Assembly: GCA_002104945.1 (NCBI GenBank)
Contig: MCFH01000059.1
Location: forward strand, 248,001-312,000
Length of the DNA stretch: 64,000 bases
Source of the DNA: Piromyces finnis finn
Taxonomy: Eukaryota; Fungi; Neocallimastigomycota
Direction: 5' to 3'
Under the pieces are notes generated by a model. The model was not told the origin of the DNA. It was given only the letters and a program-made list of their open reading frames with translations, and searched no databases. Positions 29,178-32,432 of this stretch are shown here, one piece after another (position 1 is the stretch's first letter; each line of letters starts with the position of its first letter). The position numbers were made by a program, and so were the translations under genes.

Positions 29178-32100
29178 TGTCAGAATATGTGAAACGTTAT
29201 GACACATACATTAAAATGTATTAAAACGTATTTGTATGTATTATATTTGATTATATATTTAAGCCATAATGTAAATGTATAAATACATGTAATTTGAATA
29301 GAATGTAACGATAATAGTTCTTTATTATGAAAATATATTAATAAAGTTGTTATAATTATAAAACCTAAATTAACCAACACCTAATAGATTAAGAATCTCA
29401 ATGACTCTCATTGACTCTCAGATGATTCTCTGAAAGATGAATCAAACCGCCGGACACGACATTATGTCATAGGAGAAAACTATTGGAAATTCTAATCCCT
29501 ACAATATAAGTTTATGAAATTTAGAGATTTAGTTTTGAGATTTCAAGATTTCAAAGTTTTAAGTCACAAAATTGCCTAATTAATTATTATGACTATATAG
29601 CGAAAGAAAACCCCACCCAAGAAACATGGAATATTGATAATATTATATTTTAGATATGAAATAATTTAGATTTAGATCTTAAATTTAAAAATAAACAAAT
29701 TTATAATTATATTTAAATTTGAAATTTAAACCTTTTAAATATAAACTTAAAATTTTAAAATCTAGAAAATAAACAAATTTCAAGATATTTTAAATACTTT
29801 AGCATTTTATATTAAAGATATTAAAATTCCAATTTTAATTATTTTATTCACAACAAAAATTATAAATTATCTAGTGAACTCCAAATTTATTTTATATAAT
29901 TGTTTACAATTGAGTTTTTAAATTTCATCAAATATATTAATATTATAAATACTCCAAAGAATGAGATTAAGAAGCAAAGTAATATATTTTATAAATATTT
30001 TTTTTGACAATTTTAATTCTACCATTGGTAATTGCTGAAAATCAAAAATGTCATGTAAATAATGTCGGAACAGGTGTTTGCGTTAGAAAGGTTCAATGTA
30101 TATTAAAAAATGAACAAACTGGCAATGCTAAAGCATATCCAGGTTTTTGTAAAAATGACAGGGAAAATATTCAATGCTATATAAAAACTATCAATAGACT
30201 TACAGATGGAACAGATCTTCCAAGTACTGGAAAATGTAAAAATATAGATGACTGTTCAGAAGAATCTTACATAAGATATGAGAACCAATGCCCGGGAACT
30301 AGTGCTGTTCAACTATGCGCTCCAAAGTCAAATAAAAATCAATGTAAAAACAGAAATGGATTCATTGGTATTTGTATTGAGAAGAATACTTGTATTACAA
30401 GAGGAGGTCATTACGAAGATAACAATTGTCCAAATGATGGAAAATCCATAAAATGTTGTGATTCTATTCCTTGTAAAAAGGATAATGTTGAAGAACAATG
30501 TATGTTCAAACATAATTCCATAGATAATAAATACAGTGAATTTAAAGATTTATGTCCAGGAGAAAGTGATTTTCTATGTTATATCGAAAAACCAAAGGTT
30601 ATTTATTTGAAGGCTAAGGAAAATATAGGCTCAAATGTATGATTTCGATTTAAAAAAAGACAAGCAGAATTGAATGATAAGGTATTTTTTAATGTTGGGG
30701 AATATAAATGTAATCTTTTTGTTTACGAAATTCTTTTAGCTTCCGGCATTGATATTAGAACGTCAAATAAATTAAAAAAATCTAAACATCCCTTCTTAGC
30801 TGCAAAAAGTCAACTTGATAGACCACCATGTACTACAGATTGGTTCGATAATATGGTTAAATATTTTGAACCTATTATTGATATAACTAAAGCCAAAATT
30901 GGTGACATTATTATTAATGGTGAGCATATCGGTATTGTTTCTGGACCTAGGACAACAATTAGTGCGAGTGCAATGGAATCCAAAATAGTAAATAACGAAT
31001 GGGGTTATAGAGGAGACGAAGGAACAATTAAAGTATTCAAATATGACCCTACGTATCTTCCTATTACACGAATCTCCAACGTCCAAGAAATAATCTCTGA
31101 GGTTGATACCAGTTCATTTTATGATGATGTAGATGATATTATACATTTATGTAAGGATTACCCAGAAGAATGTGAAGAAGAAACAATTTCTGATAATAAC
31201 CTAAAAACCAGCGGAATCTCTAACATCAAATACTTCTCCTTCTTTAGTACTTTTATAATGTTCACATTCATTTTGTTTTTGACTTGACAAACACATACTA
31301 TATTTTAGATTTTCCAAATTAACTTGATATTGATCTACTCATTATGTCAATTTACATACAATATCATTAAATATCCATATATTCAATTATGAAATATTTA
31401 TTCATAAATGTCAATGTGTAATTGCACAATTCTACCGATATCCCATTTTATATTTAACCCTAACCCATCAATAACAATGTAGCACCTTCATAGTAAGGGC
31501 TCCTTAGATTTAGATGACATTGATTCATCATATATATTTATTACCAACATTCAAGAATGCTGTGACGCCGTTTTAAATTTTAATTTACGGTGATTTTAGA
31601 AACCTCATATATAAATCGCCACTTTCAACGTAGTGAGTGATCGCCGACCAATTAGCTGACATTCTAATTAACCGAGCCAACTTCGATATAATTTAGAAGA
31701 GCTTTATTCTCTTCAACTATCGATATTTTAAATGTCATTATCTTACCATATTAACTTGTTATAATTTTACTGGTATATCTACTTATTTTAATTTGAAGTA
31801 AAGAAATAAATATTTGAGGAATATTTTATTTATTTGTTTGATCTTTTATGATAATCACAACATTAAAGTATATTATTTCACGATATTTTAAAGGATAGGC
31901 AATTGAGAAAAATGAATGAAAACATTAGAATATGTTATTTATTATTTATATAGGTATTAATACTTATTGTATATGTTATGGAAATTTATTCATTATTATG
32001 AAAATTTGATGCAACAATGAATGAAATTTTATGATATTTAAATTTCTCATTTTCAAATCTAAATATTTATTACTAAACATCTAGATTTGAGGGGGAAGTA

Positions 32101-32432
32101 GTGAACATATAAAATTTAAAATTCAAGAAAATAATATTTGTTTCTAGTTAAACATTGGAAGAAATTAAAACATTATATAGAAACTAAGGCTTAACATATG
32201 GAAGAATGATTTTAAAATTAAAATTAGAATATATATGAAAGATTTAATACATAAATAAAACAAAATTTAAAAGGCAAATTAAATATTTTTAAATTCTATA
32301 AGAATAATTAATCAATACAAAGAAAAACACCTAAAAGAAAATGTTAGATACATGTAATTTGAATAGAATGTAATGATAGTAGTTCTTTATCATAAAAATA
32401 TATTAATAAAGTTGACATAATTATAAACAATA
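29178..32432 (+). mobile_element. Putative non-autonomous Copia-derived element carrying a cargo gene
   Basis: LTR-like 29178-29386 (TG...TAATA), PBS 29387-29400, degenerate RNase H tail DQLADIL at 31646-31666 and PPT GATTTGAGGGGGAAG at 32084-32098. A second LTR-like block shares about 80 bp (32348-32427 vs 29282-29362). No TSD found. Confidence 0.6.
29961..31287 (+). pseudogene. Secreted Cys-rich-repeat NlpC/P60/CHAP-like (papain-fold) enzyme with a GPI-like C-tail; one frameshift and one in-frame TGA
   Basis: ATG at 29961 joins ORF 30004 if one T is removed from the T8 run. TGA at 30640-30642 is in frame with ORF 30670. Contains four CxxxxGxC...CP...C repeats, YKCNLFVYEIL (Cys), GDIIINGEHIGIV (His) and a hydrophobic C-terminus. 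Confidence 0.72.

Follow-up and report, generated by a model that had tools for sequence, protein, structure and literature searches.

Evidence for an old, dead copy of a cargo-carrying, non-autonomous Copia-type LTR retrotransposon family in the gut fungus Piromyces finnis

A 64,000-nucleotide stretch of DNA from the anaerobic gut fungus Piromyces finnis (contig MCFH01000059.1, positions 248,001 to 312,000 of the forward strand), here called the window, was analyzed. Positions 29178-32428 of the window are very probably an old, dead copy of a non-autonomous long terminal repeat (LTR) retrotransposon family of the Copia type. In this family a variable segment, apparently captured, is carried in place of gag-pol. 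The reading rests on the sister copies elsewhere in the genome, which are bounded by target-site duplications (TSDs) and with which the window copy is collinear. The window copy is the oldest copy seen in the family. Its cargo is a pseudogene, which would once have encoded a secreted protein with a cysteine hydrolase domain.

The sister family

The P. finnis genome (56.46 Mb, 232 contigs) was searched, and 20 loci of the family, which has at least 26 members, were fetched for comparison. The left flank of the window copy, consisting of the LTR, the primer-binding site (PBS) and a leader, was found at many loci, and the right flank (31464-32346) at 26 other loci with 85-91% identity. The original prediction had described a Copia-derived shell with an antibacterial-type gene inside, and proposed a search for further copies of the cargo between the same flanks. 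That search was run, and at these loci the LTR-PBS flank and the 3' module bracket paralogues of the cargo.

All 20 fetched sisters have a pair of 217-bp LTRs that differ at 0-4 positions, and the elements are 3.1-5.2 kb long. Perfect 5-bp TSDs, different between loci, flank 19/20 of them. The PBS GATTAAGAGTCTCA follows every sister 5' LTR, and the polypurine tract (PPT) AGGTTTGAGGGGGAA abuts TGTTAGAA at every 3' LTR (20/20). The 90 bp before each copy were no more alike than shuffled sequence, that is, no shared upstream flanks were found. The 5' module common to all copies (LTR, PBS and leader) is about 340-430 bp long. The common 3' module, about 2.7 kb and non-coding, is 95-99% identical among the young copies. 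Pfam searches of the family elements for reverse transcriptase, integrase and gag gave no hits, and tblastn comparison with Copia pol produced nothing significant. The sisters are genuine, recently transposed, non-autonomous LTR retrotransposons, in which shell and cargo move together as one unit. The predicted mobilizable shell is borne out in that the modules flank paralogues at many loci, with near-identical LTR pairs and unique TSDs in the sisters.

The single copy without a matching TSD is L045 (G000:C24:899900-905800). In this copy and in L035 (G000:C43:14500-20700), the LTRs of the element have additional LTR pieces, diverged or in tandem, as immediate neighbors, and for L045 the missing TSD and the extra pieces together suggest nested or recombined insertions. 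Partial copies of the 3' module also occur elsewhere (L058-L062), where they are not attached to a pol-bearing element.

Structure of the window copy

The window copy opens with a full-length 5' LTR of 209 bp at 29178-29386 (+), which starts TGTCAGAATA, ends CCTAATA and shares 84% identity with the 217-bp LTR found in the young sisters. An LTR-like block ending TAATA had been predicted here. The PBS GATTAAGAATCTCA follows directly at 29387-29400 (+). It had been described as the same as that of Copia-3, a Copia element further along the window, and this is correct but for one base, which sets it apart from the PBS of Copia-3 and of the young copies alike. Next comes the leader at 29401-29520 (+), common to all cargo classes of the family, with about 83% identity. 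The region upstream of the cargo, at 29521-29960 (+), is specific to the lineage whose cargo has a signal peptide and a Cys-rich module. Its end (29839-29965, about 125 bp) is 94% identical to the lysozyme-bearing copies and, judging by this conservation, may be an internal promoter or a 5' untranslated region (5'UTR).

The cargo pseudogene, about 1.3 kb without introns, occupies 29961-31287 (+). From 29178 to 30361, through the first 400 bp of the open reading frame (ORF), the window copy is collinear with the sisters that bear Cys-rich cargos. The segment at 30362-31317 (+) is unique to the window copy; it runs from Cys-rich module 2 through the hydrolase domain and the tail and takes in 30 bp of 3'UTR. 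The conserved 3' module resumes at 31318-32346 (+), where two blocks (31318-31401 and 31464-32346) are 88-89% identical to all sisters at a Kimura two-parameter (K2P) distance of 0.068-0.10. The element ends in a 90-bp remnant of the 3' LTR at 32339-32428 (+), which corresponds to LTR positions 106-195 of 217. Between 29280-29362 and 32345-32427 there is a direct repeat of 83-90 bp with 91-92% identity, in agreement with the roughly 80 bp of common sequence first reported for the two blocks.

Two of the predicted features were placed differently by the comparison with the sisters. The PPT-like motif GATTTGAGGGGGAAG does lie at 32084-32098 (+) and resembles the PPT of Copia-3. It is present in all copies and is not LTR-adjacent in the intact ones, where it lies about 1 kb upstream of the functional PPT. 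The motif may be a relic of an older 3' end. An ancestral long LTR in the region after 32084 was considered and was not established. The second LTR-like block had been drawn at 32099-32432. Its part from 32339 to 32428 is LTR, whereas 32099-32346 is internal sequence, 89% identical with every sister. The block is thus internal sequence plus an LTR remnant, which explains why the U3 parts of the two blocks had seemed to differ.

The element lies in the upstream region of a host gene. A DEAD-box helicase-like gene (an ORF with GTPGR...DEAD motifs) occupies 27962-28886 (-), and about 290 bp separate the 5' LTR from what appears to be the start codon of this gene, near 28886. Immediately left of the LTR stands ATTAC (29173-29177, no strand assigned), presumed to be the left half of the TSD. 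No partner was found for it, since the 3' end of the element is missing. A search of the whole window with CAACACCTAATAATTAC (three mismatches or fewer) for the TSD partner or the lost LTR end gave zero matches.

Relationship to Copia elements

Copia-3 (33545-51062, -) contains ORFs with RVT_2 (PF07727) at 33981-35767 (-). Over at least 300 bp its LTRs (33545-33852 and 50754-51062) show 100% identity, and its TSD, TTTAA, is perfect. The PBS of the family is identical at 14/14 positions to that of Copia-3, which lies at 50740-50753 (-), and the LTR 5' terminus TGTTAGAATAT is the same in the cargo family and in Copia-3. The PPT of the family is similar to that of Copia-3; a copy of GATTTGAGGGGGAAG with two mismatches lies next to the Copia-3 LTR at 33853-33867 (-), where 0.01 matches are expected by chance. 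In Copia-2, the PPT and LTR start are 71% identical to those of the family over 147 bp. The family shares its cis signals with an RVT_2-coding element, in keeping with a non-autonomous derivative of the Ty1/Copia lineage.

A relic of a Copia RNase H had been proposed at DQLADIL (31646). The string exists, yet its similarity to the Copia pol tail is not significant. When the Copia ORFs of the window and the pol tails of Copia-2 and Copia-3 were compared with the shell by tblastn, no significant pol relic was found. The best candidate, LADIL...KNF...FNN, matches the Copia-3 tail at 13/25 residues with E values of 0.33-7 in a tiny search space. The attribution of the PBS to tRNA-Lys was likewise not verified. 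No tRNA gene was found in the window, a D-arm plus anticodon-arm pattern had 0 matches, and the 17-mer anticodon arm had one in the genome.

Copia-3 is itself a very young Copia element. Its length of 17.5 kb is due to Ty3/Gypsy-type elements (ORFs at 37731-42123 and 43509-47708), which are nested within it and have LTR pairs of their own. It also contains, at 35931-36430, a perfect tandem array of about 40 TATTAC-type units with 12-bp spacing, which overlaps the ORF at 35875-36372.

The cargo protein

The encoded order is signal peptide, Cys-rich module 1, Cys-rich module 2, a domain resembling NlpC/P60 and CHAP, an acidic linker and, at the C-terminus, a hydrophobic tail homologous to the one common to the sister cargos. 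The hydrophobic N- and C-termini suggest that the protein would have been secreted and anchored, probably at the surface.

The original prediction called the cargo NlpC/P60-like. This stands at the level of the fold and of the conserved Cys and His. Across 17 aligned sequences, Cys14 in the invariant motif EYKCNLFVYE is invariant and His86, preceded by Gly, is nearly so. The alignment also contains G-H-x-G-I, TISA and NDWG motifs, with an invariant Ser 12 residues after the His and a nearly invariant Asn in NDWG further on. An AlphaFold (AF2) model with a predicted local distance difference test score (pLDDT) of 75.4 places the Cys at the N-terminus of a helix and the His on a strand. In an exhaustive VIA-align search with this model, ranks 1-34 were all NlpC/P60, CHAP or related amidase-type cell-wall hydrolases (root-mean-square deviation 2.4-4.1, 86-108 residues aligned), with Z-scores of 6.2-8.3, of which values of 7-8 are middling by the tool's own caveat. 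Foldseek returned the same families with weak E values of 0.02-0.1, and the language-model neighbors include NLPC_P60 and CHAP clusters.

Several results pull away from this assignment. The hydrolase domain has no match in Pfam, PF00877 and PF05257 included, nor in NCBIfam or PHROGs, and a Ser occupies what is usually the third catalytic position. The only profile match is a weak one to DUF6950 (E 0.19), and a sequence search of the PDB gave a weak papain-family motif match (E 0.25). Pfam, PHROGs and NCBIfam searches with both halves of the cargo yielded no usable match, and an Atlas language-model search with the Cys-rich half returned nothing usable. Taking the predicted structure and the conserved residues together, we accept the C-terminal domain as an NlpC/P60/CHAP-like cysteine hydrolase at the level of the modeled fold, and the likely target of such a cargo would be bacterial peptidoglycan.

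The homologues of the hydrolase domain are unnamed sequences, and those contigs that were examined are rich in AT. On one of them, of about 20% GC, a 158-aa homologue stands between a RING-ubiquitin-PARP gene and a Kelch gene, neighbors that mark the context as eukaryotic. The segment 30362-31317 is 76% identical in nucleotide sequence to an intact gene on the AT-rich metagenome contig L056. Residues 112-210 of the first ORF piece of the cargo are 65% identical to the mature N-terminus of that gene, and the whole second piece is 55% identical in amino-acid sequence. In the L056 gene the matching part directly follows the gene's own signal peptide. Contig L057, from another run, encodes Cys-rich modules with the same hydrolase domain and lacks the shell. 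Residues 2-113 of the first ORF piece, comprising the signal peptide and Cys-rich module 1, are 69% identical to the lysozyme cargo of the sisters. Judged from these alignments, the window cargo looks like an in-frame fusion of the family's resident N-terminus with the mature portion of a gene of an ordinary secreted-hydrolase type. The polarity may also be the reverse, the window cargo being the ancestral arrangement and the lysozyme versions derived.

The cargo slot and the origin of its contents

Several types of cargo occupy the same slot in the sisters. One encodes a signal peptide and Cys-rich module followed by a GH24 domain (Phage_lysozyme, E 1e-25), and another has the same N-terminus followed by an unclassified domain. 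In the copy on contig C151 the unclassified domain is fused to the hydrolase domain in a 514-aa product, and this copy holds the only genomic paralogue of the 30362-31317 segment. A further cargo is a 196-aa ORF. Finally, 11 copies contain a stop-riddled fragment of seryl-tRNA synthetase (SerRS), for example L043:2836-3551.

The SerRS cargo bears on how the slot is filled. The host SerRS gene (G000:C1:662516-663362, -) matches it in three pieces separated by gaps of 95 and 92 bp, while the sequence is contiguous in the 11 elements. We read the gaps as introns. Since both are missing from the element copies, the SerRS cargo appears to be a processed retrocopy made from spliced RNA, and it has been multiplied to 11 copies within the LTR shell. 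Capture of mRNA by template switching, as first proposed, is thus directly supported by a sister cargo. The same argument does not extend to the window cargo. An intron-bearing parent was looked for in this genome and none was found, and all paralogues lack introns as well, so that the intronless state is no evidence of retroposition. For the window cargo, we infer capture at the RNA level, with template switching as the source of its chimeric ORF and possibly of its deletion.

The strongest competitor accepts the family and attributes the cargo differences to events at the DNA level, namely gene conversion or unequal recombination of integrated copies with paralogous secreted-protein genes; these would account for both the chimeric ORF and the deletion of about 830 bp in the window copy. 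The junctions do fall in homologous sequence, at the start of the Cys-rich module, in the common C-terminal tail and at 8 bp of microhomology at the deletion, but template switching at short homologies leaves the same junction signatures. The region of about 440 bp upstream of the ATG is lineage-specific, with its proximal part 94% conserved, and looks more promoter-like than a 5'UTR; no trace of poly(A) was seen at the 3' junction either. Set against this, the SerRS cargo in the same slot appears to have been taken from spliced RNA. We regard the DNA-level explanation as possible, if doubtful.

Decay and age of the window copy

The intronless gene of 1.3 kb in the original prediction has the right length and indeed no introns, but it is not intact. 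From the ATG at 29961 a frame of 25 codons runs to a stop at 30036-30038. The long ORF at 30004-30642 is in another frame and ends in TGA, and a third ORF (30670-31287) continues in the frame of the second. The first break is a +1 frameshift inside the signal peptide, in a run of eight T at 29998-30005 (+). Aligned with seven intact paralogues, the window copy reads T8-G where these have T6-C-G, and the one extra T puts the ATG out of frame with the main ORF. The second is the in-frame TGA at 30640-30642 (+), in place of a Trp almost invariant across 16 homologues, the closest one included. A conserved pair of Cys residues has become Cys-Tyr. The cargo of the window copy is a pseudogene.

The shell has decayed as well. 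From 32346 the sequence jumps to LTR position 106, omitting about 830 bp found in every sister, and this missing stretch comprises the true PPT and the first 105 bp or so of the 3' LTR. About 8 bp of microhomology (AAATGT.TA) mark the deletion junction. The last 22 bp or so of the 3' LTR (positions 196-217) are also lost, and unrelated repeats stand in their place. Having lost over half of its 3' LTR and the true PPT, the window copy is now immobile. Over 90 bp, 8 substitutions and one indel separate its two LTR pieces (K2P 0.096), compared with K2P values of 0-0.019 for the LTR pairs of 20 sisters. In the 3' module, K2P between the window copy and the sisters is 0.073, within a range of 0.068-0.10, against a mean of 0.013 among the sisters. 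The window copy predates the recent burst.

It could instead be argued that the window copy is not old, and that it represents a recent insertion of a divergent subfamily, with the LTR differences owed to a small sample or to local hypermutation. Just 90 bp of the LTR pair are comparable and no closer LTR relatives were found. However, 8 substitutions and one indel in 90 bp stand against 0-4 differences in 217 bp for the 20 sisters, and the copy has two ORF lesions, the Cys-to-Tyr change, an internal deletion and an invaded 3' end. A recent insertion is improbable.

Still less credible is an intact, mobilizable element with a functional gene, in which 29178-29386 and 32099-32432 are the LTRs and 32084 is the PPT. 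The motifs exist at those coordinates and the two blocks do share their 83-90 bp, but the beginning of the supposed 3' LTR is internal in all sisters, a deletion has taken the true PPT together with LTR positions 1-105, positions 196-217 are lost as well, and the ORF lesions and an LTR divergence of 9.6% speak against a working element. The density of transposable elements in the region, the differing U3 parts, the lack of a TSD and the repeats immediately downstream might suggest that an ordinary host gene lies by chance between two unrelated LTR fragments, each from an insertion of its own. This is very unlikely, as the interval is collinear in order and orientation with TSD-bounded sisters (leader, first 400 bp of the ORF, about 1 kb of the 3' module) and the only paralogue of the gene also lies inside such an element.

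Some observations nevertheless weigh against an old Copia-type family copy as the identity of 29178-32428. No TSD of 4-6 bp was found for the window copy, as had already been noted in the original prediction, and with neither a TSD nor a complete 3' LTR we infer its integration from collinearity with the sisters. The LTRs of the window copy, the sisters and Copia-3 begin with TG and end in ...TAATA, and thus lack the TG...CA form; the canonical LTR terminus is CA, and that of the family is TA. No autonomous element with the leader of the family was found among the candidates scored, for which reason the helper has to be deduced. The homopolymer frameshift at 29998-30005 could be an assembly error; the TGA at 30640-30642, being a substitution, is less likely to be one.

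Two further features of the window were recorded. A repeat unit of about 710 bp (32760-33485), between the truncated 3' LTR and Copia-3, has 811 candidate matches in the genome with 83-95% identity. At the left edge of the window, a 1081-aa ORF (205-3450, -) encodes RNA polymerase Rpb2 domains 3, 6 and 7 and belongs to an ordinary host gene.

Related shells in other sequences

Metagenome contigs were scanned for the junction of LTR end and PBS, and seven AT-rich contigs with related LTR and 3'-module sequence (67-90% identity) were obtained. On L074 an ORF with a coiled coil and an H-type lectin domain (990-1613; PF09458, E 2e-22) lies where the cargo would be, some 900 bp past the PBS. On L079 an ORF of 376 aa (211-1341), with a hydrophobic N-terminus and no Pfam match, lies upstream of 3'-module sequence. 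These contigs hint at related shells with other cargos in other gut eukaryotes. Some metagenome contigs run from 3' module through LTR to PBS, for which the collapse of both LTRs by the assembler is the simpler explanation.

Proposed mechanism and significance

The family retains cis signals only, namely the 217-bp LTR, the PBS, the leader, the non-coding 3' module of about 2.7 kb and the PPT, around a variable captured segment. The members presumably depend on their LTR for transcription and, for packaging, reverse transcription and integration, on the proteins of autonomous Copia elements such as Copia-3, with which they have the PBS and the LTR 5' terminus in common and a similar PPT. Each integration would generate a 5-bp target duplication. 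Cargo would enter, or be exchanged, when reverse transcriptase switches template to another RNA. The window cargo would once have coded for a secreted protein that combined an NlpC/P60/CHAP-like cysteine hydrolase with two Cys-rich modules. The N-terminal third of this protein would be the resident signal peptide and module 1, and the rest, joined on in frame, would match the mature part of a separate type of gene, of which an intact example occurs in related AT-rich sequence of gut eukaryotes. The copy would have inserted about 290 bp upstream of the DEAD-box helicase gene and then decayed through the frameshift, the nonsense codon, a microhomology deletion and the loss of the LTR 3' end to later repeat insertions.

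The family described here is a fungal one with complete antibacterial-type secreted-enzyme genes in one exchangeable slot, and with a very recent spread to many sites. The window copy adds a further type of cargo and suggests that catalytic domains are exchanged in frame within one framework. Being old and bearing a different catalytic domain, it argues that the association of shell and cargo is no one-off recent accident. A more speculative proposal, which we put forward tentatively and hold to be less probable than its negation, is that the family is a long-standing, helper-dependent 'weapon shuttle', in which a catalytic domain is exchangeable within a framework of signal peptide, Cys-rich targeting module and anchor tail, and that the window copy holds the ancestral cargo. 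If so, a gut fungus would multiply and reshuffle antibacterial enzymes by retrotransposition, and, were the window cargo ancestral, the partnership would predate the recent burst, with the cargo domains swapped in frame later. If the cargos are active and expressed, the family would give an anaerobic gut fungus a route to change the dose and variety of its anti-bacterial enzymes rapidly, and would be a clean natural system for studying gene capture by template switching.

Comparison with known systems

LTR retrotransposons are known to capture genes, chiefly in the form of dead fragments in plants. In the literature searched on retrotransposons of this fungus or its phylum no description of such elements was found.

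The predicted fold of the hydrolase domain resembles those of Trichomonas vaginalis NlpC1 (6bim), E. coli MepS (8xud) and the CHAP domain of phage LysK (4csh). As in these proteins, the Cys of the model sits where a helix begins and the His is part of the sheet that follows, and the cargo would have had a similar secreted, modular architecture with a targeting module. Unlike them, it has no match to PF00877 or PF05257, and its third catalytic position is an invariant Ser.

The shell resembles plant LARD/TRIM-type and gene-capturing elements such as maize Bs1, including those in the catalogue of gene-fragment-bearing LTR elements of maize B73 (PMC2774510). These also have LTRs, PBS and PPT, lack gag-pol and need autonomous partners, and they too hold host gene sequence between their LTRs, with at least some of the captures made from spliced RNA (PMC2774510). 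The plant captures are mostly fragments and pseudogenes (PMC2774510), whereas several sister cargos described here are complete, intact secreted-enzyme ORFs. The present family further differs in having one slot with alternative cargos that share a signal peptide and tail, and in its host, an early-diverging gut fungus. LTR retrotransposons of bdelloid rotifers similarly contain extra non-retroviral ORFs common to several element types (PMC5408684). In those elements gag-pol was kept and ORFs were added, while here gag-pol is gone and the cargo is the sole ORF. The multiplication of a fungal secreted 'weapon' gene on a transposable element is paralleled by ToxB in Pyrenophora tritici-repentis (10.1101/2025.11.13.688278). 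The carrier in that case is a Helitron-like rolling-circle element acting at the DNA level, which bears a plant-directed effector with tandem duplications, whereas in P. finnis a retroelement has made dispersed, TSD-flanked insertions and its cargos are of bacteria-directed enzyme types.

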